Positions 3,231 to 50,420 of a DNA stretch of 64,000 nt are shown one piece after another. Where the stretch lies: positions 836,008,001 through 836,072,000 of the forward strand of contig NC_091283.1 in assembly GCF_032444005.1 (NCBI RefSeq), in the 5' to 3' direction. The position numbers were made by a program, and so were the translations under genes. This DNA is from Ranitomeya imitator (taxonomy: Eukaryota). Below the pieces are notes generated by a model, which saw only the letters and a program-made list of their open reading frames with translations, had not been told where the DNA came from and did not search any database. Numbering within the stretch: position 1 is the first letter of the stretch; every line of letters begins with the position of its first letter.

Positions 3231-4299
3231 TAGCAGTAGGCCTCCGAGACCGACAGGCCTCCACTTACTTTGAGTCAACTAGCTGTGCTACTATCCTTAC
3301 ATTTTTCTGACAATAGTAATCTACAAAACTAATATTTGTTCCACCTGAGTGTGGCATAGCATCAAAGCAGGTTGAGCTGTTACAACTTGTATCAAGGCTC
3401 CCAGCACAGCTGGCCTACACCGATCCCTCACCCACCTCGTCCTTATTTGACATTCAATTCTATTCTGTAAGTGATGGCCCATGTTATGTTCTGGTGCTTA
3501 GAACAAATAGTGGACCTGATAGTTAGAGCACCAGAAAAGACCTGATAGCACATTAATACAGGACAAGCTCTGGGAAGTGGAACCTCTGCTGACCGCAATC
3601 CCTAATCCTATCACATACACTAGAAATAGCCGTGGAGCGCTCCTATCATGACCTAGGCGCCTCGTCACAGCCTCAGAACTAGCTAGCCCTAGAGATAGGA
3701 AAAATAAGCCTATCTTGCCTCAGAGAAAATTCCCCAAAGGAAAAGGCAGCCCCCCACATATATTGACTGTGAGTAAGATGAAATCACAAACACAGAGATG
3801 AAATAGATTTAGCAAAGAGAGGCCCGACTTACTAAACAGACAGAAGATAGGAAAGGTCACTTTGCAGTCAGCACAAAACCCTAAAAAAGCCACACAGAGA
3901 GTGCAAGGAAAAATACCTTCCGCACCGACTAACGGAGCGGAGGCGCCCCTCTGCGCTTCAGAGCTTTCAGCAAGCAAGGAAATTCACATAAGCATGCTGG
4001 ACAGAAAAAATAGCAAACAAGAAAAAAGCAAAGCAAAACTTAGCTTCAGCTGGAGAAAACAGGTAACCAGGAAGATCCAGGAGCGAACTAGACCAATGCA
4101 ACAACATTGACAGCTGGCATCGGACAAGGATCCAAGTGGAGTTAAATAGAGCAGCCCACTAACGAATTAGCCTCGTCACCTGTGGAAGGAAACTCAGAAA
4201 CACCCACAGGCATCAGAGAAAGTCCATGGACAGAACCAGCCGAAGTACCATTCATGACCACAGGAGGGAGCCCGAAAACAGAATTCACAACAGTACCCC

Positions 4300-7200
4300 T
4301 GTCATGATCCCAATGGCAGGGGATCACAAAAGGACAAGCTCAAAAACAAAACAAGCTCTAGGGTGATGGAAACTGAGCTGACCGCGCTCCTGAACTTAAC
4401 CACACAACTAACAGTAGCCGGGGAACGTGCCTACGATGATCCTAGACGTCTCGCTCCAGCCGAAGGACTAACTTCCCCTATAAGAAGAAACACAGACCTC
4501 ACTTGCCTCCAGAGATACACCCCACAGAAATAGCAGCCCCCCACATGTAATAACGGTGAAATGAGAGGAAATCACAAACGTAGAGATGAAAACAGAATCA
4601 GCAAAAATGAGGCCCGCTAAAGCTAGATAGCAGAGGATACAAAAGTAAACTGCGCGGTCAGCGAAAAACCCTTCAAAAAACCATCCTGAAATTACTTGAA
4701 CTCATGTGCCAACTCATGGAACATGAGGAGTAATTTCAGCCCACTAGAGCAACCAGCAGAAAAAAATCACATAACTGCAAGCTGGACTAAGACAAAATGA
4801 AAACAAAACATAGAACCGGAAAATCAAAACTTAGCTTGTCCAGAAGATCACAGACGCAGGGAGCAGAGGTAAACAGACACGCTGATTACATTGATAGCCG
4901 GCGAGGAAATGACAAGAAAGCCAGGTTAAATAGGAAACACCCATAACCTGATGGAACAGGTGGACACCAGAGACTGCAGAGAACACAAGTCACCCAGTAC
5001 CATCAGTAACCACCAGAGGGAGCCCAAAAACAGAACTCACAACAGTACCCCCCCCCTTGAGGAGGGGTCACCGAACCCTCACGAGAACCACCAGGGCGAC
5101 CAGGATGAGCCCTATGAAAAGCACGGACCAAATCGGCAGCATGAACATCAGAGGCAATCACCCAAGAATTATCCTCCTGACCATAACCCTTCCACTTAAC
5201 CAAATACTGGAGTTTCCGTCTGGAAACACGAGAATCCAAGATCTTCTCCACAACATACTCCAATTCACCCTCCACCAGCACCGGATCAGGAGGCTCAAGA
5301 GAAGGAACGACAGGTACCTCATACTTCCGCAACAACGACCGATGGAACACATTATGAATAGCAAACGATGCTGGGAAATCCAAACGAAACGACACAGGGT
5401 TAAGAATTTCCAAGATCTTATAGGGACCGATGAACCGAGGCTTGAACTTAGGAGAAGAGACCTTCATAGGAACAAAACGAGAAGACAACCACACCAAGTC
5501 CCCAACAAGAAGTCGAGGACCCACGCGGCGACGGCGATTAGCAAACTGCTGAGCCTTCTCCTGGGACAACTTCAAATTGTCCACCACATGACTCCAAATC
5601 CGATGCAACCTATCCACCACCATGTCCACTCCAAGACAATCAGAAGGCTCAACCTGACCAGAGGAAAAACGAGGATGAAACCCCGAATTACAAAAGAAAG
5701 GAGAAACCAAGGTAGCAGAACTAGCCCGATTATTAAGGGCAAACTCGGCAAGCGGCAAAAAGGAAACCCAGTCATCCTGATCAGCAGAAACAAAACACCT
5801 TAAATAAGTTTCTAAAGTCTGATTAGTTCATTCCGTCTGGCCATTCGTCTGGGGATGAAATGCAGACGAAAAGGACAAATCAATGCCCATCTTAGCACAA
5901 AACGTACGCCAAAATCTAGACACAAACTGGGATCCCCTGTCAGAAACGATGTTCTCCGGAATGCCATGCAAACGAACCACGTTTTGAAAAAACAGAGGGA
6001 CCAACTCAGAGGAGGAAGGTAACTTAGGCAAGGGTACCAGATGAACCATCTTAGAGAAACGGTCACACACAACCCAAATGACGGACATTTTTTGAGAGAC
6101 AGGGAGATCCGAAATAAAGTCCATGAAAATGTGCGTCCAAGGCCTCTTTGGAATAGGCAAAGGAGACAACAATCCACTGGCCCGAGAACAGCAAGGCTTA
6201 GCCCGAGCGCAAACTCCACAAGACTGCACGAAAGAACGCACATCCCTCGACAAGGAAGGCCACCAAAAAGACCTGGCCACCAAGTCTCTAGTACCAAATA
6301 TTCCAGGATGACCTGCCAACACAGAAGAATGAACCTCCGAGATGACTCTACTGGTCCAATTATCCGGAACAAACAGTCTTTCCGGCGGACAACGATCAGG
6401 TTTATCCGCCTGAAACAAAATCACTCCATCCCTAAGGATACCAGTAGGCTCAGAATTTCCAGGGGAGTCAGGCAAAACTCCTAGACAAAGCATCCGCCTT
6501 CACATTCTTTGAACCTGGCAGGTATGAAACCACAAAATTGAAACGAGAGAAAAACAGTGACCAACGAGCCTGTCTAGGATTCAGACGCTTGGCAGACTCA
6601 AGGTACATCAGATTTTTGTGATAAGTCAAGACCACCACACGATGTCTAGCACCCTCAAGCCAATGACGCCACTCCTCAAATGCCCATTTCATGGCCAAAA
6701 GCTCCCGATTACCAACATCATAATTTCGTTCAGCGGGCGAAAACTTTCTAGAAAAGAACGCACATGGCTTCATCACTGAGCCATCGGGACTTCTCTGCGA
6801 CAAAACCGCCCCCGCTCCGATCTCGGAAGCATCAACCTCAACCTGAAAAGGAAGCGACGTATCTGGCTGACGCAACATAGGAGCGGAAGAAAACCGGCGC
6901 TTAAGTTCCTGAAAGGCCTCCACAGCCATAGGAGACCAATCAGTAACATCAGCACCCTTTTTAGTCAAATCCGTCAAAGGCTTAACCACACTAGAAAAAT
7001 TAGTTATGAAGCGACGATAAAAATTAGCAAAGCCCAAGAACTTCTGCAGACTCTTAAGAGATTTAGGCTGCGTCCAGTCACAAATAGCCTGAACCTTGAC
7101 GGGATCCATCTCAATAGTGGAAGGGGAAAAAATATACCCCAAAAAAGAAATCTTCTGGACTCCAAAGATACATTTAGAACCCTTTACAAACAAAGAATTG

Positions 7201-9938
7201 GCCCGCAGGACCTGAAACACCTTCCTGACCTGCTGAACATGAGTCTCCCAGTCATCAGAAAAAACCAAAACATCATCCAAATACACGATAATAAATTTAT
7301 CCAGATATTCACGGAAAATATCATGCATAAAAGACTGGAAGACAGAAGGAGCATTAGAAAGTCCAAAAGGCATCACCAAATACTCGAAATGGCCCTCAGG
7401 CGTATTAAATGCGGTTTTCCACTCATCACCCTGCCTTATCCGCACAAGATTATACGCACCCCTAAGATCAATTTTAGTGAACCATTTAGCCCCCTTAATG
7501 CGAGCAAACAAATCAGTCAACAATGGCAAAGGATACTGATATTTGACTGTAATCTTATTCAAAAGACGATAATCTATGCAAGGCCTCAAGGAACCATCTT
7601 TCTTAGCCACAAAAAAGAAACCTGCTCCCAAAGGGGATGAAGATGGACGGATATGCCCCTTTTCCAAGGACTCCTTAATATAATTCCGCATAGCAGCATG
7701 CTCTGGCACTGACAGATTGAACAAACGACCTTTAGGGAACTTACTGCCAGGAATCAAATCTATAGCACAATCGCAATCCCTGTGAGGAGGAAGCGAACTG
7801 AGCTTAGGCTCCTCAAAAAGCTCCCGATAATCAGACAAAAATACCGGAACCTCAGAAGGAGTAGATGAAGCGATAGAAATCGGAGATGCATCATCATGAA
7901 CCCCCTGACATCCCCAGCTTAACACAGACATTGTTTTCCAGTCCAGGACTGGGTTATGAGTTTGTAACCATGGCAGACCAAGCACTAAGACATCATGTAA
8001 ATTATACAGTACCAAAAAGCGAATCACCTCCTGATGAGCGGGAGTCATACGCATGGTCACTTGTGTCCAGTACTGAGGTTTATTCATAGCCAAAGGTGTA
8101 GAATCAATTCCTTTCAAAGGAATAGGAACTTCCAGAGGTTCTAGACTAAACCCACAGCGTTTGGCGAATGACCAATCCATAAGACTCAGGGCAGCGCCTG
8201 AATCCACATAGGCATCGACGGAAATGGATGATAATGAACGAATCAGCGTCACAGACAGAATGAACTTAGACTGTAAACAGACTTATCAACCTTTTTTGTG
8301 CGTTTAGAGCATGCTGATATAACATGAGCTGAATCACCACAATAAAAACACAATCCATTTTTCCGCCTATAATTTTGCCGTTCACTTCTGGACTGAATTC
8401 TATCACATTGCATTATCTCAGGTGCCTGTTCAAAAGACACCGCCAAATGGTGCACAGGTTTGCGCTCCCGTAAACGCCGATCAATCTGAATAGCCATAGT
8501 CATGGACTCATTCAGACCTGTAGGCGCCGGGAACCCCACCATAACATCTTTAATGGCTTCAGAAAGACCATCTCTGAATTTTGCAGCCAGAGCGCACTCA
8601 TTCCACTGAGTAAGCACCGACCATTTCCGAAATTTCTGACAATATATTTCTGCTTCATCTTGCCCCTGAGAGAGAGCTAATAAAGCTTTTTCAGCCTGAA
8701 TCTCAAGGTTAGGTTCCTCATAGAGCAAACCCAATGCCAGAAAAAACGCATCCACATTGAGCAACGCAGGATCCCCTGGTGCCAATGCAAATGCCCAATT
8801 CTGAGGATCCCCCCGCAGGAAAGATATAACAATCTTGACCTGCTGAGCAGGGTCTCCAGAAGAGCGAGATTTCAAGGAAAGAAACAACTTGCAATTATTC
8901 CTAAAATTCAAAAAACTAGATCTATCTCCAGAAAAAAACTCTGGGACAGGAATTCTAGGTTCAGAGATAGGCGTATGTACAACAAAATCTTGTATATTTT
9001 GAACCTTAGAAGCAAGATTATTCAGGCTAGAAGCCAAACTCTGGACGTCCATGATAAACAGCTGAAGTCAGAGCCATTCAAAGATTAAGAGAAGGAGGAA
9101 AAAAAAAAAAAAAATATCCTCAGACTACATTTCCTCCTACTTCAGCCAAAACGAAGACCAATTTATTTTTTATGGCCGGCTATACTGTCATGATCCCAAT
9201 GGCAGGGGATCACAAAAGGACAAGCTCAAAAACAAAACAAGCTCTAGGGTGATGGAAACTGAGCTGACCGCGCTCCTGAACTTAACCACACAACTAACAG
9301 TAGCCGGGGAACGTGCCTACGATGATCCTAGACGTCTCGCTCCAGCCGAAGGACTAACTTCCCCTATAAGAAGAAACACAGACCTCACTTGCCTCCAGAG
9401 ATACACCCCACAGAAATAGCAGCCCCCCACATGTAATAACGGTGAAATGAGAGGAAATCACAAACGTAGAGATGAAAACAGAATCAGCAAAAATGAGGCC
9501 CGCTAAAGCTAGATAGCAGAGGATACAAAAGTAAACTGCGCAGTCAGCGAAAAACCCTTCAAAAAACCATCCTGAAATTACTTGAACTCATGTGCCTACT
9601 CATGGAACATGAGGAGTAATTTCAGCCCACTAGAGCAACCAGCAGAAAAGAATCACATAACTGCAAGCTGGACTAAGACAAAATGAAAACAAAACATAGA
9701 ACCGGAAAATCAAAACTTAGCTTGTCCAGAAGATCACAGACGCAGGGAGCAGAGGTAAACAGACACGCTGATTACATTGATAGCCGGCGAGGAAATGACA
9801 AAAAAGCCAGGTTAAATAGGTAAATAGGAAACACCCATAACCTGATGGAACAGGTGGACACCAGAGACTGCAGAGAACACAAGTCACCCAGTACCATCAG
9901 TAACCACCAGAGGGAGCCCAAAAACAGAACTCACAACA
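4300..9938 (-). mobile_element. Ty3/Gypsy chromovirus LTR retrotransposon B, nested in the PPT of A
   Basis: LTRs at 4300-5044 (745 bp) and 9186-9938 (753 bp). TACCCC is duplicated at 4294-4299 and 9939-9944. Own PPT next to 5045. Confidence 0.96.
5003..9052 (-). pseudogene. Element B gag-pol, frameshifted (gag 8249-9052; PR-RT-RH 6468-8252; IN 5828-6493; IN-end/chromodomain 5003-5758)
   Basis: CFYCGDSAHVISAC knuckle, VDSGA protease, YLDD RT, integrase core and YVVEKILDSR..YLVKWKGY chromodomain are split over several frames. Confidence 0.9.
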
Positions 9939-12118
9939 TACCCCCCCTTGAGGAGGGGTCACCGAACCCTCACGAGAGCCCCCAGGCCGACCAGGATGAG
10001 CCAAATGAAAGGCACGAACTAGATCGGCCGCATGAACATCAGAGGCAAAAACCCAGGAATTATCCTCCTGACCATAACCCTTCCACTTGACCAAGTACTG
10101 GAGTTTCCGTCTCGAAATACGAGAATCCAAAATCTTCTCCACCACATACTCCAACTCCCCCAACACCGGAGCAGGAGGGTCAACGGATGGATCCACAGGC
10201 GCCACGTATCTCCGCAACAACGACCTATGGAACACATTATGGATGGCAAAAGAATCTGGAAGGGCCAAACGAAATGACACAGGATTGATAACCTCAGAAA
10301 TTTTATACGGACCAATGAAACAAGGCTTAAACTTAGGAGAGGAAACCTTCATAGGAACATAACGAGACGACAACCAAACTAAATCCCCAACACGAAGTCG
10401 GGGACCCACACAGCGCCGGCGGTTAGCGAAACATTGAGCCTTCTCCTGGGGCAATGTCAAATTGTCCACCACATGAGTCCAAATCTGCTGCAACCTATTC
10501 ACCACAGTATCTACACCAGGACAGTCCGAAGACTCAACCTGCCCTGAAGAGAAACGAGGATGGAAACCAGAATTGCAGAAAAACGGCGAAACCAAAGTAG
10601 CCGAGCTGGCCCGATTATTAAGGGCAAACTCAGCCAATGGCAAAAAGGACACCCAATCATCCTGATCAGCAGAAACAAAGCATCTCAGATATGTTTCCAA
10701 CGTCTGATTAGTTCGTTCGGATTGGCCATTTGTCTGAGGATGGAAAGCCGAGGAAAAAGACAAATCAATGCCCATCCTAGCACAAAAGGATCGCCAAAAC
10801 CTCGAAACAAACTGAGAACCTCTGTCCGAAACGATGTTCTCCGGAATGCCATGTAAACGAAACACATGCTGGAAAAACAATGGCACCAAATCAGAGGAGG
10901 AAGGCAATTTAGACAAGGGTACCAAATGGACCATCTTAGAAAAGCGATCACAAACCACCCAAATGACCGACATCTTTTGAGAGACGGGGAGATCCGAAAT
11001 AAAATCCATAGAAATATGCGTCCAGGGCCTCTTCGGGACCGGCAAGGGCAAAAGCAACCCACTAGCACGAGAACAGCAGGGCTTAGCCCAAGCACAAGTC
11101 CCACAGGACTGCATAAAAGAACGCACATCCCGTGACAAAGAAGGCCACCAAAAGGATCTAGCCACCAAATCTCTGGTACCAAAGATTCCAGGATGCCCAG
11201 CCAACACCGAACAATGAAGCTCAGAGATAACTCTGCTAGTCCATTTATCAGGGACAAACAGTTTCTCCGCTGGGCAACGGTCAGGTCTATCAGCCTGAAA
11301 TTTTTGCAGCACCCGCCGCAAATCAGGGGAGATGGCAGACAAAATTATCCCCTCTTTGAGAATACCTGCCGGCTCAGAAACACCCAGAGAGTCAGGCACA
11401 AAACTCCTTGACAGGGCATCAGCCTTCACATTCTTAGAGCCCGGAAGGTACGAAACCACAAAATCAAAACGGGAGAAAAATAACGCCCATCGAGCCTGTC
11501 TCGGATTCAACCGTTTGGCAGACTCAAGATAAGTCAAATTTTTGTGATCTGTCAAGACCACCACGCGATGCTTGGCTCCTTCAAGCCAATGACGCCACTC
11601 CTCGAATGCCCACTTCATGGCCAACAATTCTCGATTACCAACATCATAATTGCGCTCAGCAGGCGAAAACTTTCTAGAAAAGAAAGCACATGGCTTCATT
11701 CCTGAGCCATCAGAACTTCTTTGCGACAAAACAGCCCCTGCTCCAATCTCAGAGGCATCAACCTCAACCTGAAACGGGAGTGAAACATCTGGCTGGCACA
11801 ACACAGGGGCAGAAGAAAAACGACGCTTCAATTCCTGAAAAGCATCCACGGCCGCAGAAGACCAATTGACCACATCAGCACCCTTCTTGGTCAAATCAGT
11901 CAACGGTTTAGCAACACTAGAAAAATTAGCGATGAAGCGACGATAAAAATTAGCAAAGCTCAGGAACTTTTGCAGGCTCTTCACAGATGTCGGCTGAATC
12001 CAATCATGAATGGCCTGGACTTTAACAGGGTCCATCTCGACAGTAGAAGGGGAAAAAATGAACCCCAAAAATGAAACCTTCTGAACTCCAAAGAGACACT
12101 TTGACCCCTTCACAAACA
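9897..12118 (-). CDS. Element A pol 3' part (end of RT, RNase H, integrase, chromodomain)
   Basis: Open frame of the 767-aa ORF; its first residues come from the CR1 insert. Contains RH, HHCC/DDE integrase and chromodomain. Confidence 0.9.
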
Positions 12119-12377
12119 TAGTAACATAGTAACATAGTAACATAGTTAGTAAGGCCGAAAAAAGACATTTGTCCATCCAGTTCAGCCTATATTCCATCAT
12201 AATAAATCCCCAGATCTACATCCTTTTACAGAACCTAATAATTGTATGATACAATATTGTTCTGCTCCAGGAAGACATCCAGGCCTCTCTTGAACCCCTC
12301 GACTGAGTTCGCCATCACCACCTCCTCAGGCAAGCAATTCCAGATTCTCACTGCCCTAACAGTAAAGAATCCTCTTT
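12119..12377 (-). mobile_element. ~260-bp CR1 3' end inserted into the RT of element A
   Basis: Reverse complement of 2500-2760 with a (TAACATAG)n tail at 12119-12145. AACA occurs at both junctions; removing the insert restores [11 protein letters not shown]. Confidence 0.92.
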
Positions 12378-14254
12378 AACAAGGAATTAGCACGAAGGAC
12401 CTGGAACACCATTCTGACCTGCTTCACATGAGACTCCCAATCATCCGAAAAGACCAAAATATCATCCAAATACACAATCAGGAATTTATCCAGGTACTCT
12501 CGGAAAATGTCATGCATAAAGGACTGAAATACTGATGGAGCATTGGAAAGCCCGAATGGCATCACCAGGTACTCAAAATGGCCCTCGGGCGTATTAAATG
12601 CTGTTTTCCATTCATCGCCCCGTTTAATACGCACAAGATTATACGTCCCTCGAAGGTCTATCTTGGTAAACCAACTAGCTACTTTAATACGAGCAAACAA
12701 GTCGGACAGCAACGGCAAAGGATACTGAAATTTGACAGTAATTTTATTAAGAAGGCGGTAATCAATACATGGTCTCAAAGAACCATCCTTCTTGGCCACA
12801 AAAAAGAACCCTGCTCCCAACGGTGATGACGATGGGCGAATATGGCCTTTCTCCAAGGATTCCTTTATATAACTCCGCATAGCGGCGTGTTCTGGCACAG
12901 ATAAATTGAACAATCGGCCCTTAGGAAACTTACTTCCAGGAATCAAATTAATTTCACAATCGCAATCCCTATGAGGAGGTAGGGCACTGGCTTTGGGCTC
13001 ATCAAATACATCCTGATAATCCGACAAAAACTCCGGAACTTCAGAAGGAGTAGAAGACGAAATTGACAAAAATGGAACATCACCATGTACCCCCTGGCAA
13101 CCCCAGCTGGACACAGACATAGATTTCCAGTCCAATACTGGATTATGGACCTGTAGCCATGGTAACCCTAAAACGACCACATCATGCAGATTATGTAACA
13201 CCAACAAATGGATATCCTCCTGATGTGCAGGAGCCATGCACATGGTCAGTTGGGTCCAGTACTGAGGCTTATTCTTGGCCAAAGGCGTAGCATCAATTCC
13301 TCTCAATGGAATAGGATACTGCAAGGGCTCCAAGAAAAAACCACAGCGCCTGGCATACTCCAAGTCCATCAAATTCAGGGCAGCGCCTGAATCCACAAAT
13401 GCCATAACAGAATAGGATGACAAAGAGCAAATCAGTGTAACGGACAAAAGAAATTTAGACTGTACCGTACCAATGGTGGCAGACCTAGCGAACCGCTTAG
13501 TGCGCTTAGGACAATCGGAGATAGCATGAGTGGAATCACCACAGTAAAAACACAGCCCATTCCGACGTCTGTGTTCCTGCCGTTCAGTTCTGGTCAAAGT
13601 CCTATCACACTGCATAGGCTCAGGCCCATGCTCAGATAGTACCGCCAAATGGTGCACAGTTTTACGCTCACGCAAGCGCCGATCGATCTGAATGGCCAAG
13701 GACATAGACTCATTCAGACCAGCAGGCATGGGAAATCCCACCATGACATCTTTAAGGGCTTCAGAGAGACCCTTTCTGAAAATTGCTGCCAGGGCACATT
13801 CATTCCACTGAGTGAGCACAGACCACTTTCTAAACTTCTGACAATATATCTCTGCTTCATCCTGACCCTGACACAGAGCCAGCAAGATTTTCTCTGCCTG
13901 ATCCACTGAATTAGGTTCGTCATAAAGCAATCCGAGCGCCAGGAAAAATGCATCCACATCACGCAATGCCGGATCTCCTGGCGCAAGGGAAAATGCCCAG
14001 TCTTGAGGGTCACCACGTAACAAAGAAATAATGATCCTTACTTGTTGAGCAGGATCACCTGAGGAGCGAGGTTTCAAAGCTAGAAACAATTTACAATTAT
14101 TTTTGAAATTCAAGAACTTAGATCTATCACCAAAAAACAAATCAGGAATTGGAATCCTAGGCTCTGACATCGGATTCTGAACCACAAAATCTTGAATGTT
14201 TTGTACCCTTGTAGTGAGATTATCCATCCAAGAGAACAGACCTTGAATGTCCAT
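12378..14254 (-). CDS. Element A gag-protease-RT 5' part (single frame)
   Basis: Probable ATG at 14254 (MDIQ). CFYCGDSTHAISDC knuckle, VDSGA, YLDD. Confidence 0.9.
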
Positions 14255-16786
14255 GTCTACACCTGTGTTCTGAACCACTCAGAGGTAAAGGGGAAAAGTG
14301 AGACAGAACACGCTGCAAAGAAAAAAAAATGGTCTCAGAGCTTCACTTATCCCTCTATTGAGATGCATCAATACTTTTGGCCAGCTGTACTGTTATGTTC
14401 TGGTGGTTAGAACAAATAGTGGACCTGATAGTTAGAGCACCAGAAAAGACCTAATAGCACATTAATACAGGACAAGCTCTGGGAAGTGGAACCTCTGCTG
14501 ACCGCAATCCCTAATCCTATCACGTACACTAGAAATAGCCGTGGAGCGTTCCTATCATGACCTAGGGGCCTCATCACAGCCTCAGAACTAGCTAGCCCTA
14601 GAGATAGGAAAAATAAGCCTATCTTGCCTCAGAGAAAATTACCCAAAGGAAAAGGCAGCCCCCCACATATATTGACTGTGAGTAAGATGAAATCACAAAC
14701 ACAGAGATGAAATAGATTTAGCAAAGAGAGGCCCGACTTACTAAACAGACAGAAGATAGGAAAGGTCACTTTGCAGTCAGCACAAAACCCTAAAAAAGCC
14801 ACACAGAGAGTGCAGGGAAAAATACCTTCCGCACCGACTAACGGAGCGGAGGCGCCCCTCTGCGCTCCAGAGCTTCCAGCAAGCAAGGAAATTCACATAA
14901 GCATGCTGGACACAAAAAATAGCAAACAAGAAAAAAGCAAAGCAAAACTTAGCTTCAGCTGGAGAAAACAGGTAACCAGGAAGATCCAGGAGCGAACTAG
15001 ACCAATGCAACAACATTGACAGCTGGCATCGGACAAGGATCCAAGTGGAGTTAAATAGAGCAGCCCACTAACGAATTAGCCTCGTCACCTGTGGAAGGAA
15101 ACACCCACAGGCATCAGAGAAAGTCCATGGACAGAACCAGCTGAAGTACCATTCATGACCACAGGAGGGAGCCCGAAAACAGAATTCACAACAGGCCCAG
15201 ACCCTGATACCTCATGCCTGGCTGAGTGCTGCCGCGCCATTCCAAAATTTGTACTGTGCGTGAACTGAGGCCACTTTCCTGGTGTCTGCCCCTAATTTAA
15301 TATGTTTTGGCAGCTTTTGGGCCCATTTGAAGGTATTGTGTATGCGTTTCTTTTTGCCTCCCAATGACCGTGTGCACACAGCCTTAGTGGAAACTCGAAT
15401 ATTTACTGAACTTTGGCCAAATTTTGCCAATTTTGAGGAAAATGCTCGGGAATCCAAACATGAATCCAAATATGCAAGGTTCTTACCAACTTTGACATTG
15501 GCAACATTTTCCGAACAAGTTCACTCATCTCTAGTGAAATTCAGGTAATCCCTTGGATTCAAGGATTCAACACCTTAGTTTAGTCTGAAGTCACATTTGT
15601 TCCAACCTCTCTTCTCAGGTTTGTTTGGGGTTCCTCAGAGATAAGTGCTCGATCATCTCCACTTTATTTTCTATGAAGCCCCTACTGTTATTTGCCATAA
15701 CATTTCTATGTTGATAACATTAAAATACATACTTCTTTTTGGTTTCGTCACGTCTGCACAACCACAAAACTTTTCAGATCAATCCTGATATGCTAAAATT
15801 TGTACATACTAAAAATAGAGGTCCCAAAAATCCAGCCGTTGATAACCCCATTTAGAGGTGACTTTGGAGCCAATAATTGGGGTCTATCTTTTATAGGATG
15901 ATTTATAAATAATATTACAGATCTTATTGATGATCTGTACTGTGTGTACAATGATTAATTTAGTACAAAGTCTATGATGCTATTAAAAGTGGATGTACAC
16001 GTACTTTGCATGCTCTAAATTTATTCAAGTCAGGCTTTACCCCAGTTTCTGTTACCTCTCATCAATTCTAGGTGATTGCCAGCACATATCCGATGGTATC
16101 TTAAGTCCTGACTACATGGATTCCTTTTAACATTTTGGATGGAAGCTATTAGACAGTCATTTGTCAATCAATGTGAGGTAGATGTTGCCCAGGCAAATAA
16201 AATGATGAGATGCACATGATTAGATCATAGTATTACTCTTTACTGAGCAGTCTCACTATAGAACCCAGTGCTCCATGATGTGGTCATTCAAGACTTAAGT
16301 CAATAATATGTTATATTTTTCCAAAAAAGCTGTCTTGGCACTCTCTGCAAAGGAAAATGGTCCTCCTTTAACCACTAGTCAGAGGCACCTCACCTAGACA
16401 CATTAGATGTAACACTTTTCACTGAAGAAGGGCAACACCCCAAAACATGTGAAAGTGGAGTTTCTGTTTTGATTCTTAACCTAAGTCATGTGGCAAGGCT
16501 CGTTAAGGGATTGACATTGACTTTTAAGATTGCTACATCCAATGAGTGGCACCACAGATCATGCCATCTTCCTTCTGAAGAAGTTATTTGCATATCAAAA
16601 ATAACAAAAATTGGAAACAGTTCAATCTCATATGAACTAAATGGAAATGGCTTTCAACTTTCCAAGAATGAAAAACTGAAGCTTTTCTTTGGTTTAACTT
16701 TTTATTGGTTGCGAACCTCCACAATGTTGTGAACTACAATAAGGTAGCAGAGTAAGAGAAGATGACAATCAGAAGATGGAAAATGT

Positions 16787-19360
<2,574 letters not shown>

Positions 19361-26171: not shown

Positions 26172-27029
26172 TTCCTGTGTGTACATTGATTAATTTACTA
26201 CAAAGTCTATGATGCAATTAAAAGTGGATGTACACGTACTTTGCATGCTCTAAATTTAATCAAGTCAGGCTTTATCGCAGTTTCTGTTACCTCTCATCAA
26301 ATTTTAGGTGATTGCCTGCACAGATCCGGTGCTATCTAAAGTCCTGACTACATACAATGGATCCCTTTAAACCTTTTGAATGGAAGCTATTAGGCAGTCA
26401 TTTGTCAATCAATGCCAGGTAGATGTTGCCCAGGCAAATAAAATGATGAGATGCACATGATTAGATCATAGTTTTACCCATTACTGAGCAGTCTCACTAT
26501 AGGACCCAACATGATGTGGTCATACAAGACTTATTAAGTCATTAAGATGTTTTACTTTTACAAAAAAGCTGTCTTGGCACTCTCTGCAAAATAAAATGTT
26601 CCTCCTTTAACCACTAGTCTGAGGCCTCTTACCTAGACACATTAGATATCATTCTTTGCACTGAAGATGGGCAAAACCCCAAAACATGTGAAAATGGAGT
26701 TTTTGGTCTGATTTCTTCCCCTTAAGTCATGTGGCAAGGCTCGGTTAGGGGGTTGACATTGACTTTTAGGATTGCTACATCCAATGAGAGGCACCAGAGA
26801 TCATGTCATCTTCCTTCTGAAGAGGTGATTTGTATAATAAAAAATACCAAAAATTGGAAACAGTTCAATCTCATATGAACGAAATGGAAATGTCTTTCGA
26901 CTTTCCAAGAATGAAAAACTGAAGCTTTTCTTTGGTTTAACTTTTTATTGGTTGTGAACTGCCACAATGTTGTGAACTACCATAAGGCAGTAGAGTAAGA
27001 GAAGATGACAATCAGAAGATGGAAAATGT

Positions 27030-30811
<3,782 letters not shown>

Positions 30812-35240: not shown

Positions 35241-36480
35241 GGCATCACTGTATGGTTTCCCATCCCCCCAGCAGGCAGATACACACACTTACTCGCCTCC
35301 CCAGGTTATGCAATTAATTCTGTCCTCTGCTTGCTTTTTGCTGTCAGTGTGCATACTTCCTGGCTGTATGCATAGGACAGCTGCGCCTGACCTTCCTGAT
35401 TATTAGAGAGAAAGTGTGCGCATTCCTAATTTGTCCCCAACCTATTGCTAAGAGGCACTTGGTACTTGACGCACCTACACCAATGGGAAGGTGCCTGAGT
35501 AACATCCTCTTTCAGTCTCTGTGCAGCTAATGAGTAGCCAGGTCCTATCTATTTTCTGATCTTGCCTTTTCCTGTTTCCAGACATGTAATCTGTTCTCCT
35601 GTTGCACGGGCTAGTCTCATAAATGGGCATTGGTGCAGATGCTTTCCTCCTCTAGATTCTGTAAATCTTTGGAGCAGATCTCTGATGCCCATGGAATATA
35701 ATGTGCTAACAGCTCTTCAGAATGGCTACTTTGAGGTTCCCCACAGTCAGTTGGGCATTTGGAAGTTTTTGATGCAGGAGGAAACAGGGGTGATTTGCCA
35801 CCTTTGAGGATTGTGTGAGGTTAAGGTGAAGGAAGAGGATGAGAGACCATTTGATGCAGCTCTTGCCATCCACTGGAGCACATACTTTTTCTGAGCCTCA
35901 TCTACTAGGCGTTTCAAAACAAAGGTAGTCGAGTAGGTAGTCCAGTAATGTTGTCAGTGGTTGTTTGAATAAGACGAGACGCTACATCATGAATCTCCAA
36001 TGACTTTTGCACCCCAGTCACAGACTGGCTAGACTAGGCAATGGTGTTGTTTTTTAGTGTCATGCATTGATCTTGTGTGTTTGCAGTCTGTGCATTTTTG
36101 TAGAGTCTTCTGCACCTGCTGTTGCTACTGCTGCTGATGTTTCAAACGATTTTTTAAAATGTTTAGACTCCAAGTCGGGTCTCCATCTGGTGGGTTGAAT
36201 GTGGTGGAAGGTGTGTTAGAGGCGTATTATACTGTTTCTACTCTGTGGAAATTGATGCCACTTTAGTGGTGTGTGACAAATACTTTTGGAATGTAGAGAC
36301 TCTAATTTTGGTCTCCATCTGGTGGGTTACCTGTGTAAGTAGGGCTCGCAAACAGACAGGCAGGCCTGCACTTAGTTTCACTCAACTACCAGTGTTACTT
36401 TCCTTACATTTATCTTATATAGTATGAAACTGATATTTGTTCAAATCCGACCCGAACCGAATCTTGAAAGGTTCGCTCAT

Positions 36481-36879
36481 CTCTACTTGTATATACGTTT
36501 GGATTGGCTTTCTGTTGAATCTAGTGGCGCTCGAGTACGTTCGTCGAACCGTTCGGCAAACGTCTCAATGTTCGGCGAATCAAACCAAATCGAACCTTGA
36601 AAGGGTCGCTCATCTCTAGTTGTATATACGTTTGGATTGGCCTTCTGTTGAATCTAGTGGCGCTCGAGTACGTTCGTCGAACCGTTCGGCAAACGTCTCA
36701 ATGTTCGGCGAATCAAACCAAATCGAACCTTGAAAGGTTCGCTCATCTCTAGTTGTATATACGTTTGGATTGGCCTTCTGTTGAATCTAGTGGCGCTCGA
36801 GTACGTTCGTCGAACTATTCGGCAAACGTCTCAATGTTCGGCGAATCAAACCAAATCGAACCTTGAAAGGGTCGCTCAT
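36481..36879 (+). repeat. Three tandem 133-bp copies of the hAT terminal segment, including the TIR
   Basis: Units start at 36481, 36614 and 36747; each ends ...GAACCTTGAAAGG(G/T)TCGCTCAT. A single-copy relative lies at 55660-55783. Confidence 0.92.
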
Positions 36880-40444: not shown

Positions 40445-43400
40445 TGTTAGGACTGGCGGAACGCACCAAGACAGGTGACAAAGATGCGTTCGCAGTCCGG
40501 GGTCCACCGTGCAGGTGAGAACCTGCTGCTAGCAATTTGCAGACTATATAGCGGTACACTAAAGTAAACACGCGTGGGTTAAACCTCACCCAGCGTGAGG
40601 AAAACGATCCTGTTAATTCACAGGACCGCAATACCGCACTAGAGTGCGAGCAAGTGGCCAGCGGACTTAACCCCAGAAGGGATTGAAGCCCGATTAGGCC
40701 CTTGCTGGCACAACACCGCAACTGGGTGTGTAGAGAACCTTCAGAAATATAAGCGCACAAGTGCGCGAGCGATGCCGCACTAACGGACGCCACTAACCAC
40801 CCAGACTTGGGTATGGAAAGCGCAAGGCAGGCGCACGGCGCCGTACTGGCAGGCACAGCTACAGGACGCTGTGATGTGTGTTTAGTGTAGTAGGCCAAGT
40901 CGGGCGCTAGATAGCAGCCGTACACCTTCCGCGAACAGACATTCAATAGGGAAGGGGTAACCAAGAACGACTTGCACTCACACATACACACATATCAATT
41001 GTAAGACAATACTAGCGCATGGCCGTGCGGTCATGCGCAGTTTATATAGCTGCAGCACAGGAAATGGCTATAGAACTTTTGCCCTTCTAGGACCTGCCAA
41101 GAGGACCAATGGAATGTGCCGCAGAGCCTGAGCACATGACCCTCGATCTCCAACGGGAGATCTTGCCCTGGGCATGCTCAGTGTGTGCAGATAAGGACTT
41201 AGTCCCAGAGAAGTCCGCTCGCTGCTGACCAGAATAGGCTTCAAAGGCAGAAGCTGGAGAAGCAGCAATAACTCTTCTCACAGAGTCAGACTGAGCGAGA
41301 CGCTGGGATCGACGTCCCTGCTGAGCAGACTCCACTGCGGCTGGAGGGGAATGGGAGACCGCAGCGGAGACGGATCGAGATTCCCCCTGTGCAGCAGAGG
41401 AAACTCGACTCCTAACATTACCCCCCCTCCTAGGGCCCCCCCCTCCTTGGGCCTCGCTACGCTCGAAGGCAGCAATGAGCTGTGGGGCCCGAATGTTTTC
41501 AGCAGGCTCCCAAGACCTGTCCTCTGGACCATAACCCTTCCAATCCACCAAATAAAACTTTTTGCCGCGTACCACCTTGCACCCCAAAATAGCGTTCACC
41601 TCGTAATCGTCCGTAGACGAACCCGATGTCCCGGCAGATGACTCGGAAAACCGGGACATGTATACGGGTTTCAAGAGGGACACATGAAAGGTGTCGGTGA
41701 TACCCAAGCGTGGAGGAAGAGCCAGGCGGTAGACCACGGGATTAACCTGCTCGAGGACCTTGAATGGGCCCAAGTAGCGAGGAGCAAACTTAGTGGACTC
41801 AACTCGCAGCCTGATGTTACGGGCGGAGAGCCACACCAAGTCGCCAGGAGCAAAGGCCGGGGCAGGGCGCCGATGTGCATCGGCGGAGGACCTCATTCTC
41901 TCCTTCGAGGCCCGAATGGCATCCTGAGTGCGGTCCCAAATGTCCCGTGCCTCCACTGCCCAGTCTGCCACCCTGGAGTCAGCAGAGGACACGGGCATAG
42001 GCACAGGAACCCGCGGATGCTGGCCGTAATTAAGGAGGAAAGGAGTCTGACCGGTGGAATCGGCTACAGCGTTATTAAGGGCGAACTCTGCCCATGGTAA
42101 TAAAGATGCCCAGTCATCCTGCCTGGCAGAAACAAAATGTCGCAGATATGTGACCAGAGTCTGATTGGCCCTCTCTACCAACCCATTCGTCTCGGGATGA
42201 TATGCGGAAGAGAGATTTAACTCAATGCTGAGAAGACGACAAAGCTCTCTCCAGAACCGAGACGCAAACTGGGGACCCCGGTCACTGACAATTTTGTCTG
42301 GCATGCCGTGTAGGCGGAAGATGTGTCTTATGAACAACGCTGCCAAGGCCCGTGCAGAAGGTAACCGTGGGAGCGGCACCAAGTGCACCATTTTCGAGAA
42401 ATGATCGGTAATTACCCAAATGACGGTACAGCCGCGAGACTTGGGCAAACCCACCACAAAGTCCATCCCGACCATCTCCCAGGGCCTGTCTGCCACCGGC
42501 AAGGGATAGAGTAACCCAGACGGCCGTTGTCGAGGAGACTTATTTTTGGCGCATGAGACACACGCCAGAACGTAGTCCCTGACATCTCGCAGCATATGCG
42601 GCCACCAGTACGTCCTCGCCAGCAGCTCAGATGTCCTTTTAGTCCCAAAGTGTCCACCCACCCTGGAGGAATGAGCCCAAGAGAGAACCTCCGGTCGCAA
42701 ATTTATGGGCACAAAAGTCTTGCCCGGAGGCACAGACTCAAGCGACACCGGAGCCACGGTTCTCAAGCTCTCAGAAGGAACAATAAGCCGAGGCTCTCCT
42801 TCCTCCTCCTCAGATGACACAACAGAGCGAGAAAGAGCATCAGCTCGAATGTTCTTCTCCCCAGCGACATAATGGAGGGTGAAGTGGAATCGGGAGAAGA
42901 ATAAGGACCATCTGGCCTGGCGAGAATTTAGCCTCTGGGCTGTTTGCAAATATAGCAAATTTTTATGGTCTGTAAATACTTGAAAGGGAAAACGAGCCCC
43001 CTCCAAGAGATGTCTCCACTCAGAGAAAGCCAATTTCATCGCCAGCAACTCCCTGTCCCCGATGGAATAATTCCTCTCCGCTGGTGTGAAGGTCTTGGAG
43101 AAGAAAAAGCACGGATGCTTCCGACCTTGAGCATCCTTCTGGAAGAGGACTGCTCCAGCACCAACGGAAGAGGCATCCACCTCCATTATAAACGGCTTAT
43201 CGACATCGGGACGATGTAGGATGGGAGCGCTAGCAAAATGAGACTTAGTAGAAGAAAAGGCCTTGGAGACCTCTTCAGACCACACTTTGGGATTTGCTCC
43301 CTTCTTGGTGAGGGCTACCAAGGGAGCTACCAAAGTTGAGAAATGGGGGATGAACTGGCGGTAATAATTAATGAACCCCATAAAGCGCTGCACCGCTTTA

Positions 43401-46400
43401 AGTGAATGGGGTTCTTGCCAGTCCATCACAGCCTGTAGTTTGGCAGGATCCATAGCCAATCCTTGGGCAGAGATGATATAGCCCAGGAAAGGTAAAGACT
43501 CCTGCTCAAACACACACTTCTCCAACTTTGCGTAAAGAGAGTTTGCCCGTAAGAGGTCGAAGACTCTGCCAACATCTCTCCGGTGGGAGTCAATATCTGG
43601 AGAGAAGATGAGAATATCATCCAGATAGACTACGACCGAGGTGGAAAGCATATCCCGGAAGATGTCGTTGACAAAGTCTTGGAAAACGGCTGGGGCATTA
43701 CAGAGCCCGAAGGGCATCACCAGATACTCATAATGCCCATCTCTGGTGTTAAACGCCGTCTTCCATTCGTCCCCCTCACGAATGCGAATCAGGTTATAAG
43801 CTCCCCGCAGGTCTAATTTGGTAAATACCTTAGCTCCCCGTAGCCTATCAAAAAGCTCAGAAATCAGGGGCAGCGGGTACTTATTTTTAACGGTGATGGC
43901 GTTAAGACCCCTGTAGTCTATGCAAGGACGCAACTCTCCATTCTTCTTCTGTACGAAGAAGAACCCTGCCCCAGCTGGTGACACTGACTTCCTAATAAAT
44001 CCTCTTGCCAAATTCTCCTGGATGTATTGGGACATAGCCTCCGTTTCCGGGAGAGAGAGGGGATAGACACGTCCCCGAGGAGGTTCTGCTCCAGGCAAGA
44101 GATCTATAGGACAGTCATAGGGACGGTGAGGCGGAAGGGTCTCCGCGGCTTTTTTGGAAAAGACGTCTGCATAAGACCAATAGTGTTTGGGGAGAGTAGA
44201 GAGATCTGCGGGTATCTCAGTGGTGGAAACCTGAACGCACTCTTTCACACATCTGCCCTTGCAGGATTCACTCCAACCCAATATCCTCCCAGAGGTCCAC
44301 TCAATATGTGGGGAGTGGAAACGAAGCCAGGGCATTCCCAGCAGAATCTCATCCATTCCCTCGGGAAGGACAAGAAGGGAAATAGTCTCCTGGTGGGATG
44401 GGGACATGGCTAACGTGAAAGGGACAGTCTGATGTGTGATCTGTAATGGAAGTGTCGACCCATTCACCACTCTCACGGTTACTGGTCTGGCTAGCATAGC
44501 CAGAGGTATTGCGTGGCGCTGAGCAAAAGCAGAAGACATAAAATTTCCCTCTGCTCCTGAATCCACACAAAGCTCTACTGTAAGAGTGGATGTGCCTAAC
44601 AGGATTGTCCCTTTAAAGGACAATTTTGAGGAAAATGCCGCGGTGTCCAGTGAACCTCCTCCAATGGACACTAGACGCGATCGTTTTCCCGACCGCCGTG
44701 GACATGTATTAGCGAAATGTCCCGGTTGCTGGCAATTTTTACATAACACAGGTACTCGAGCGGTCTGAGACCTAGATCCCGCTCGAGAAACCTCCATGGC
44801 CTCATGGGAGTCGGACGCCATAACAGGAGATTCTAGAGGTTTGGCAAAGATGGGAGCCAGCCGAAACCTCTGCCTACACTGGGTCCGCTCCAACCTCCGC
44901 TCGTTAAAACGGAGATCGATGCGGGTAGCTATAGTAATGAGCTCCTCCAGTGTGGCGGGAATCTCCCTGGTGGCCAAGGCGTCCTTCACATGATCTGCCA
45001 GTCCTCTCCAGAACACCGGAATAAGGACTTTATCCGGCCATTCCAGCTCAGAAGCTAGAGTCCGGAATAGGATGGCAAACTGGCTGACCATGGACGAAGC
45101 CTGAGTAATTGCCAACAATTGGAGCGCGGTATCGTGGGTGACACGAGGTCCCAGAAAGACCTGCCTCAGAGCGTCCAGGAAGATAGGAGCACTCTGCACC
45201 ACACGATCACCACGTTCCCAAAGCGGCGTTGCCCACTCCAACGCCCTGCCCGACAAGAGAGATATAATGAATCCCACTTTCGCCCGTTCCGTAGGAAAAC
45301 GTGCAGCCAGCAGCTCGAGATGTATGGAGCACTGGCTCACGAATCCCCGACATGGCTTACTGTCACCAGCAAACTTGTCTGGAAGCGGGAGACGGGATAA
45401 AGTCGGAGCAGGGGTGGCAGCGGACAAACTGGCTGCAGCTGCACTTGCAGCCTGAACAGCGACAGCAGTAACGTCCACAGCTGAGGTTGTGCGCTCGAGA
45501 GCCGCCAACCTACCCTCCAGCTGCTGGATGTACTGCTGTAGACGCTGACCGTCTGCCATTTACTAGCCAGACCCTGGCGCTAGTATTATGTTAGGACTGG
45601 CGGAACGCACCAAGACAGGTGACAAAGATGCGTTCGCAGTCCGGGGTCCACCGTGCAGGTGAGAACCTGCTGCTAGCAATTTGCAGACTATATAGCGGTA
45701 CACTAAAGTAAACACGCGTGGGTTAAACCTCACCCAGCGTGAGGAAAACGATCCTGTTAATTCACAGGACCGCAATACCGCACTAGAGTGCGAGCAAGTG
45801 GCCAGCGGACTTAACCCCAGAAGGGATTGAAGCCCGATTAGGCCCTTGCTGGCACAACACCGCAACTGGGTGTGTAGAGAACCTTCAGAAATATAAGCGC
45901 ACAAGTGCGCGAGCGATGCCGCACTAACGGACGCCACTAACCACCCAGACTTGGGTATGGAAAGCGCAAGGCAGGCGCACGGCGCCGTACTGGCAGGCAC
46001 AGCTACAGGACGCTGTGATGTGTGTTTAGTGTAGTAGGCCAAGTCGGGCGCTAGATAGCAGCCGTACACCTTCCGCGAACAGACATTCAATAGGGAAGGG
46101 GTAACCAAGAACGACTTGCACTCACACATACACACATATCAATTGTAAGACAATACTAGCGCATGGCCGTGCGGTCATGCGCAGTTTATATAGCTGCAGC
46201 ACAGGAAATGGCTATAGAACTTTTGCCCTTCTAGGACCTGCCAAGAGGACCAATGGAATGTGCCGCAGAGCCTGAGCACATGACCCTCGATCTCCAACGG
46301 GAGATCTTGCCCTGGGCATGCTCAGTGTGTGCAGATAAGGACTTAGTCCCAGAGAAGTCCGCTCGCTGCTGACCAGAATAGGCTTCAAAGGCAGAAGCTG

Positions 46401-46561
46401 GAGAAGCAGCAATAACTCTTCTCACAGAGTCAGACTGAGCGAGACGCTGGGATCGACGTCCCTGCTGAGCAGACTCCACTGCGGCTGGAGGGGAATGGGA
46501 GACCGCAGCGGAGACGGATCGAGATTCCCCCTGTGCAGCAGAGGAAACTCGACTCCTAACA
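40445..46561 (-). mobile_element. Full-length Ty3/Gypsy chromovirus C (Tf1/sushi-like)
   Basis: 973-bp LTRs at 40445-41417 and 45589-46561 with no differences noticed. TGTTAGGA..TCCTAACA termini; GAACGG TSD at 40439-40444 and 46562-46567; PPT at about 41420-41430. Confidence 0.98.
41087..45559 (-). CDS. Element C single gag-pol polyprotein (1490 aa): Gag, CCHC, protease, RT, RNase H, integrase, chromodomain
   Basis: Uninterrupted ORF with [30 protein letters not shown] integrase and [27 protein letters not shown]. Confidence 0.97.
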
Positions 46562-47039
46562 GAACGGTTTCCAATTTTTGTTATTTTTGACATGCAAATA
46601 ACTTTTTCTGAAGGAAGATGACATGATCTCCGATGCCTCTCATTGGATGTAGCAATCCTAATAGTCAATATCAACCCCTTACCGAGCCTTGCCACATGAC
46701 TTAGGGGAGGAAACCAAAACAGAAACTCCACTTTCACATGTTTTGAGGTGTTGTCCATCTTCAGTGCAAAGCAGGATATCTAATGTGTCTAGGTGAGAGG
46801 CCTCAGACTAGTGGTTAAAGGGGGAACATTTTCTTTTGCAGAGAGTGCCAAGACAGCTTTTTTGGGAAAATAAAACATATTATTGACTTAATAAGTCTTG
46901 TATGACCACATCATGGAGCATTGGGTTCTGTAGTGAGACTGCTCAGTAAAGGTTAAAACTATGATCTAATCATGTGCATCTCATCATTTTATTTGCATGG
47001 GCAACATCTACCTGGCATTGATTGACAAATGACTGTCTA

Positions 47040-48683: not shown

Positions 48684-50420
48684 TAGAGATGAGCGAATAT
48701 TTCAATATTCGACTTGGATTACTACGTTCGCTGAATTTGCAATATTCGCCTATTAATTCCTCGAATATTCGCCGAACATAACTGTTGTGAATTCTGTTGT
48801 CGGGCTCCTTCCTGCGGTCATGAATGGTACTTCGGCTGGTTCTGTCCATGGACTTCCTCTGGTGGGTGTTTCTGAGTTTCACAGGTGACGAGGTTAATTC
48901 GTTAGCTGCTGCTCTATTTAACTCCACTTAGATCTTTGCTCCATGCCACCTGTCAATGTTCCAGTATTGGTCTGTTCACTCCTGGATCGTTCTTGTGACC
49001 TGTCTTCCCATCAGAAGCTAAGTTCCAGCTTGTATTTCTTTGGTTTGCTATTTTTCTGTCCAGCTTGCTATTTAATTTGTTGTCTTGCTTGCTGGAAGCT
49101 CTGGGAAGCACAGGGAGCGCCTCCGCACCGTGAGTCGGTGCGGAGGGTCTTTTTGCGCCCTCTGCGTGGTCTTTTTGTAGGTTTTTGTGCTGACCGCAAA
49201 GTAACCTTTCCTATCCTCGGTCTGTTCAGTAAGTCGGGCCTCACTTTGCTAAATCTATTTCATCTCTGTGTTTGTATTTTCATCTTTACTCACAGTCATT
49301 ATATGTGGGGGCTGCCTTTTCCTTTGGGGAATTTCTCTGAGGCAAGGTAGGCTTTATTTTTCTATCTTCAGGGCTAGCTAGTTTCTTAGGCTGTGCCGAG
49401 TTGCATAGGGAGCGTTAGGCGCAATCCACGGCTATTTCTAGTGTGTTTGATAGGTTTAGGGATTGCGGTCAGCAGAGTTCCCACGTCCCAGAGCTCGTCC
49501 TTATTATCAGTAACTATCAGGTCATTCCGTGTGCTCTTAACCACCAGGTCCATTATTGTCCTGACCACCAGGTCATAACACATAACCGAACACCATTATA
49601 GTCAATGGGAGGCAAAAACAAATGCATGCACAACACCTTAGAACGTCCCCAAATGGTGACAAAAGGCATCAAATGAGGGACAGACACCAGGAAAGTCGCC
49701 TCAATTCACCCACAGTACAAATACAAATTGCAGCATGGAACTGCAGCAATCAGCCAGGCATGAGGTATCGTGGTCTGGGCCAGCATTTACAGCTTTCCAA
49801 TGAACATCACAGTAAAATGAGTGGGTGAGGGATCAGTGTAGGGCCCCTTTGCTGGGATACCACATGCAACAGCTCTACCTGCTTTCATGCTGAGCCACAC
49901 TCAGGTGGCACAAATATCAGTTTTGTAAACTACCATTGTCAGAAAAATGTAAGGATAGTAACATGGGTAGTTGAATGCAAGGAAGTGGAGGCCTGACGGT
50001 CTCAGAGGCCTACTGCTACAGGTAACACACGTGAAGGAGACCCAACCAGGAGTGTTCACATTTCCAAAAAATATTGGCAGACACCACCAAAGTGGCATCA
50101 ATTTCACCACAGTAGAAATAGTCTAATAGGGACAAACAGGTCTTCCACTACACCCAATCCAGCAGATGGACACCCAACCAGGAGTGTTCACGTTTCCCAA
50201 AATTATTTGCAGACACCACCAATGTGGCATCAATTTCACCACAGTAGAAATAGTAGATTAGGGACGACAGGTTTTTCACTACACCCAATCCAGCAGATGA
50301 ACACCCATTCAGGAGGGTTCACATTTAAAGAAATGAGGGCCTTACCCCACAAAAGTGGCATCAATTTCACCACAGTAGAAATAGTCTAAAAGGGACCAAG
50401 AGGTCTTTCGCTACACCCAA
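48684..50420 (-). mobile_element. hAT element right end, inverted (TIR, spacer, ~3 units of the 133-bp array)
   Basis: TAGAGATGAGCGAA at 48684; 49590-50420 is the reverse complement of the spacer and array seen at 23810-24850. Confidence 0.75.
48783..49580 (+). mobile_element. Solo LTR (798 bp) related to element A
   Basis: TGTTGTGAATTC..CATAACA termini; CATAAC TSD at 48777-48782 and 49581-49586; aligns to the reverse complement of the A LTR. Confidence 0.93.

Follow-up and report, generated by a model that had tools for sequence, protein, structure and literature searches.

A putative 11-nt self-primer in an apparently intact chromovirus of the poison frog Ranitomeya imitator

Which primer starts the reverse transcription of the LTR retrotransposon that we call element C, located in a 64-kb stretch of Ranitomeya imitator DNA (the window, which contains no N positions and nothing resembling human sequence)? 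The element carries, in its LTR, an 11-mer that is perfectly complementary to its primer binding site (PBS), at the place where its RNA is expected to start. We consider it highly likely that element C primes itself with the 5' end of its own RNA, although where the RNA starts, how it is cut and that it primes are inferences. The complementarity, the position, the conservation with covariation among relatives and the protein family membership are established at the sequence level.

Element C (46561-40445, minus strand) is an intact Ty3/gypsy chromovirus. Its 5' LTR (45589..46561, minus strand; 973 nt, TG...CA) is 100% identical to the 3' LTR (40445..41417, minus strand), which carries the second copy of the primer 11-mer at 41018-41008. 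Both LTRs are flanked by the 6-bp target-site duplication CCGTTC (minus strand; 5' copy at 46562..46567, 3' copy at 40444-40439). The element is inserted in a repeat longer than 1.4 kb (flanks 47039-46562 and 40442-39462), and the other copies of this repeat in the window (16150-17513 and 26391-27826, 90-92% identical) are both empty at the exact insertion point (near 16620 and 26863), where they present CAGTTC once, versus CCGTTC in the flanks of element C. Since these paralogous copies are uninterrupted there, the borders of the insertion are independently fixed.

A single open reading frame of 1,490 aa (41087..45559, minus strand) encodes gag-PR-RT-RNase H-IN-SH3-chromodomain, with the catalytic motifs visible in the alignments. 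The Pfam search on this frame identified gag-asp protease (327-413), RVT_1 (536-696), RT_RNaseH (785-891), Integrase_H2C2 (950-1008), rve (1025-1122), SH3_Tf2-1 (1239-1299), and Chromo (1319-1367), and the RNase H domain is intact. The gag is of the PEG10/RTL type (matches to DUF4939/RTL1-8_LDOC, Retrotrans_gag, and Ty3_capsid), and a zinc knuckle is also present. The polypurine tract AGGAGGGGGGG (41421..41431, minus strand) is followed by TAA and then by the 3' LTR (3 nt gap), an order found identical in two related frog loci, L002 and L003. The frame enters the 3' LTR by 330 nt (41087-41417, minus strand), and U3 thus encodes the last ~110 residues, past the chromodomain. In a word search, the best protein matches came from Ranitomeya imitator, at 81-94% identity, and next from fish (~45%); the names of the best matches, in frog and fish, were Tf2 polyprotein, Tf2-9 polyprotein, and GIN1-like. 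On the basis of its domain set and of these names, element C is placed in the Tf1/sushi group, within its vertebrate branch, as a young and apparently intact chromovirus. The identical LTRs, the intact frame and the known empty site are evidence of recent activity, and the element is probably active.

The TATA box TATATAAA lies at 46185..46192 (minus strand; LTR position 370), and its first T is 30 nt ahead of the putative self-primer GCGCTAGTATT (46152..46162, minus strand; LTR position 400), which we take as RNA nucleotides 1-11. At the predicted start, the minus strand reads ...GCAGCTATATAAACTGCGCATGACCGCACGGCCAT/GCGCTAGTATTGTCTT..., with T and G at -1 and +1. The LTR ends with CA at 45589, and a single T (45588, minus strand) separates it from the PBS AATACTAGCGC (45577..45587, minus strand), the perfect reverse complement of the primer, so that the junction is ...CCAGTCCTAACA/T/AATACTAGCGC/CAGGG... 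Perfect complementarity spans exactly 11 nt; as RNA, the pairing can be extended to 13 bp, with G12.U45588 (the spacer base, which is G in relatives) and U13-A45589 (the last LTR base). An earlier note on this DNA had placed the TATA box at 46192-46185, the 11-mer 30 nt further on at 46162-46152, and its perfect complement one base past the LTR at 45587-45577; we recovered all of these on the minus strand, exact to the base. The note had also read the 11-mer as a self-primer, and the missing TGG, the position of the 11-mer at the start expected from the TATA box, the fold of the 5' UTR onto the PBS and the pairing kept in relatives, all described below, agree with that reading.

The start of the RNA at G 46162 is only predicted from the TATA spacing. 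It is the key point for element C, because in Tf2 the choice of the transcription start decides whether the RNA contains the self-primer (PMC5341516). Only two TATA-like motifs are present in the LTR of element C: transcription from the second, TATATAG at LTR position 868, could yield a shorter RNA that lacks the primer.

The proposed pathway would proceed as follows. RNA polymerase II would start ~30 nt past the TATA box of the LTR, at G 46162, producing an RNA that begins with GCGCUAGUAUU. The 5' end of this RNA would fold back over the 574-nt R-U5 and pair with the PBS one base past the LTR, which would be kept in an open loop by the conserved U5 helices. As in Tf1, by analogy, the RNase H of the element itself would then cut after about nucleotide 11, and the freed 3'-OH of the primer would be extended into minus-strand strong-stop DNA, to be transferred to the 3' R. 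The length of the primer-PBS loop (574 nt) counts against self-priming.

This pathway is modelled on a known one. In Tf1, the RNA's first 11 bases anneal to the PBS, and RNase H cleaves between nucleotides 11 and 12 (PMC7175516). PMC10085805, PMC6317226, and PMC4600332, with reference to Levin 1995/1996, Lin & Levin 1997, and Butler et al. 2001, present self-priming as common in the Tf1/sushi group, vertebrate members included. Thus, the probable self-priming of element C is an already known habit of this group, ordinary rather than a new mechanism. Element C shares with Tf1 and Tf2 of Schizosaccharomyces pombe, the founding self-primed LTR retrotransposons, a primer of 11 nt with which the RNA begins (as predicted in element C) and a complementary PBS just past the 5' LTR, as well as the single gag-pol frame, the chromodomain integrase, and the Tf2-type SH3 domain (PMC7175516, PMC10085805). 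It differs from them in its unrelated primer sequence, its long LTR (973 nt), its long primer-PBS distance (574 nt), and its vertebrate host.

Other counterparts are found among the vertebrate sushi-like and Amn-like members (the "V-clade"), whose hosts include fishes, amphibians, and amniotes (PMC2774666). Sushi-ichi of pufferfish, Amn-san of Xenopus tropicalis, and their relatives resemble element C in the PEG10/RTL-type gag, the pol, the chromodomain, and the LTR ends TGT...ACA (for the LTR features of sushi, see PMC3601003). Self-priming is predicted for vertebrate members, as for element C, according to Butler et al. 2001 (through PMC6317226, PMC10085805, and PMC4600332). Element C differs from the V-clade elements in belonging to a dendrobatid-frog family and in having its own primer sequence.

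For comparison with element C, we considered two further elements of the window (A and B), three frog loci (L001-L003), and five fish loci; these are reported here as nine relatives, or ten elements with element C. We also asked how the leader RNA folds. The RNA from 46162 to 45550 reached a minimum free energy of -252 kcal/mol, with z = -11 against shuffles for the whole leader, and its first 13 nt are placed on the PBS. The minimum-energy fold of the full leader also pairs primer and PBS in L003 and L006; in L002, L004, and L005, it lacks this pairing.

An RNAalifold consensus was built from element C and L001-L003 (four sequences, two of which are close) over the last ~120 nt of U5 and 60 nt downstream. 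It contains, on the minus strand, a terminal U5 hairpin just upstream of the PBS (45594..45642), with compensatory pairs and also found in the single-sequence fold; a long-range helix between U5 positions 45672..45687 and 45567-45552, with the gag AUG inside; and a second short helix between 45649-45644 and 45574-45569. Within the consensus fold, a 19-nt unpaired loop holds CTAACA, the spacer, and the PBS. Compensatory changes affect 7 of the 45 pairs, and 97% of the cells are paired; in controls where the 3' partners were shifted by 1-3 columns, the corresponding values are 0-1 pairs and 30-41%. Derived from four sequences, two of them close, the covarying U5 helices of the C family are suggestive only. 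An analogous helix occurs in the fish loci L005 and L006, between a CACTCGC segment of U5 and the sequence just past the AUG. The consensus fold (45552-45687, minus strand) competes with the local hairpin ACTAGCGCCAGGGTCTGGCTAGT.

A leader of this kind raises the strongest of the alternatives, namely that the complementarity is real and selected, but that instead of priming it serves leader folding, closing the 5' UTR into a circle for packaging, for dimerisation, or to control the translation of gag. The strong structure of the leader (z = -11) and the conserved covarying helices, which enclose the PBS and mask the gag AUG, speak for such a role. Against it, the site lies exactly where LTR elements all have their PBS, 1-2 nt past the LTR, no other candidate PBS is present, and experiments showed the homologous pairing in Tf1 to be the primer (PMC7175516, PMC4600332). 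Moreover, a structural role and priming can coexist. We therefore regard folding in place of priming as unlikely, and self-priming as the better supported function of the pairing.

The U5:post-PBS helix of element C is similar to the duplexes on either side of primer:PBS in the Tf1 "pretzel", which PMC10085805 describes as three duplexes: primer:PBS plus two in which PBS-adjacent sequences pair with LTR sequences. In element C, the additional "pretzel" duplexes obtained by RNAduplex on long inputs were mostly at the level of shuffles (-51.9 vs -47.9 +/- 3.3), so that information came from the alignment-based fold alone. Between the post-primer bases and the LTR end, the duplex is weak, with 3 bp past a 1x1 loop.

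Element C differs from its frog relatives in the poly(A) signal. Between its putative start and its LTR end (45589-46162, minus strand), neither AATAAA nor ATTAAA was found, only ACTAAA, at +133 (46030). In the frog relatives, AATAAA sits in the U5 hairpin loop, ~36 nt before the LTR end (L002:3930-3971, L003:6550-6589); V-clade chromoviruses also have AATAAA close to the LTR 3' end, whereas element C itself does not. A rather speculative possibility, which we hold as doubtful, is that the covarying long-range helices of the C family are a vertebrate version of the Tf1 "pretzel" acting as a switch, with the PBS open and the gag AUG (45559-45557) buried with U5, and that in element C something else may have taken the place of the canonical poly(A) signal found in its relatives, with transposition nonetheless recent. 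If such a switch existed, the priming-competent fold would be translationally silent, and the local hairpin that hides the PBS would be the translated form.

The comparison among the ten elements bears on the identity of the primer. The nine relatives share the geometry of element C, with seven other primer sequences, giving eight distinct primer sequences in all, each with its own matching PBS. In 10/10 elements, a pyrimidine at -1 precedes G at +1; the PBS begins 1-2 nt past the LTR, and a TATA-like box lies at -28 to -30 in most of them. Across the clade, the primer is 9, 10, or 11 nt long, and 11 is the commonest value. The equality in length with Tf1 pointed out in the earlier note thus holds as a measurement and loses its special character: it is the commonest value of the clade, not a coincidence calling for a separate explanation.

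The R. imitator elements L001-L003 present ~84% nucleotide identity to element C in the body, and their LTRs are partly different. In these loci, TATATAAA, the 21-nt spacer, and the primer are near-perfectly kept, the LTR diverges a few bases past the primer, and the PBS lies one or two bases past the LTR end ...CCCTAACA. The primer 11-mer of L001 and L003 is that of element C; in the 5' LTR of L003, a C-to-T change falls in the primer pairing, which is still possible as G.U. In L002, GCGCTAGTATC faces TATACTAGCGC with 10 bp, both position-11 partners being changed without compensation. The conservation of the primer within this close family could partly reflect promoter constraint, and covariation within it is uninformative; distant relatives are needed.

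Such relatives were found in fish, with 39-46% protein identity to element C and different primers, each fitting its own PBS. In L004, the primer GTGAGTAGATT pairs with the PBS AATCTACTCAC over 11 bp, and in L006/L007, from Pimephales promelas, GTCAGATCGTT pairs with AACGATCTGAC, again over 11 bp. L005 has the same PBS as L006, and its primer GTCAGATCATT is an 11-mer with one CpG-type mismatch. The pairing spans 10 bp both in L008, from Takifugu (GCTTGATCTA with TAGATCAAGC), and in L009, from Hemibagrus (GCGAAGTAAT with ATTACTTCGC). The bases right after the primer (46152-46147 in element C) are also alike, ...TT/GTCTT in element C and L004 and ...TT/GTTTG in L006; this similarity between frog and fish elements with 45% protein identity might mark the cleavage site.

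Within the window, elements A and B carry TATTTAA ahead of primers that are 9 nt long, GCCAGCTGT in A and GCCGGCTAT in B, with the PBS ACAGCTGGC and ATAGCCGGC, respectively. Two primer positions differ between A and B, and for each of them the PBS carries the compensating change. The two elements are like element C in the distance of exactly 30 nt from the TATA-like box to a primer that begins with G, and in the place of the PBS, which in A and B lies 2 nt past the LTR; they differ in the length of the primer (9 nt, not 11), in its unrelated sequence, and in their LTRs, which cannot be aligned with that of element C. The protein of element A is 40-48% identical to that of element C, which confirms a separate lineage. 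The earlier note had described the A/B primers as unrelated to that of element C with the same geometry, and element C as a separate lineage; each A/B primer fits its own PBS, and both descriptions stand.

The same comparison weighs on a second alternative, in which a host RNA binds the PBS as primer, whether an internal or half tRNA of the kind seen in copia or some other small RNA, and the LTR 11-mer is irrelevant to priming. The post-LTR sequence of element C, TAATACTAGCGCC, lacks the TGG expected for the CCA at a tRNA 3' end. ARAGORN found no tRNA gene in the 64-kb window, and no Rfam family was detected in 45400-46700 at E <= 1. With neither a TGG in the PBS nor a tRNA gene in the window, priming by a tRNA 3' end was rejected. 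More in general, the PBS varies among the ten elements and in each case fits the LTR of the same element where the RNA is predicted to start, which disfavours a shared host primer, since such a primer would hold the PBS constant. An internal-tRNA primer would be excluded by this covariation argument only. Taken as a whole, a host primer appears very improbable to us, and the self-primer is the reading best supported by the sequence comparisons.

The window holds three occurrences of the 11-mer (one per LTR, plus the complement at the PBS), while none is expected on the basis of 100 dinucleotide shuffles. When the LTR was shuffled, a complement of at least 11 nt to the first 25 nt past the LTR appeared in 17/5000 shuffles, and to the first 14 nt in 0.15% of them; these rates (0.15-0.3%) impose no requirement that the site be 30 nt past a TATA box. 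Chance complementarity between primer and PBS, which gains some credit from the complements of 7-9 nt that are common between the post-LTR sequence and a shuffled 973-nt LTR, was rejected on the comparative data and is in our view practically negligible, as 11 nt are reached in just 0.15-0.3% of the shuffles, the site is here also 30 nt past the TATA box, and nine other elements repeat the arrangement with different sequences.

From fish to frog, element C and its nine relatives keep the geometry of primer, PBS, and TATA box while the sequence drifts. Since the geometry is conserved despite this drift, the start of R becomes predictable from sequence alone when the family of element C is annotated. 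Gypsy elements are a large share of the giant poison-frog genome (PMC6278860), and element C offers in such a genome a clean, datable case of a probably active self-primed chromovirus.

Some further features of the window were observed. Elements A and B are nested (3482-15194, minus strand), with B located between the internal region of A and its 3' LTR (3482-4293). The LTRs of B, starting from 4299 and 9185, are about 640 nt long with 3 mismatches, and those of A are 97.5% identical; a third A-like LTR, 84% identical, lies on the opposite strand at 48781-49580. Finally, a tandem repeat with a 133-nt unit occupies positions 36452-36879 (at least three copies, 96% identity), and similar units occur near 2759-3042 and 23879.
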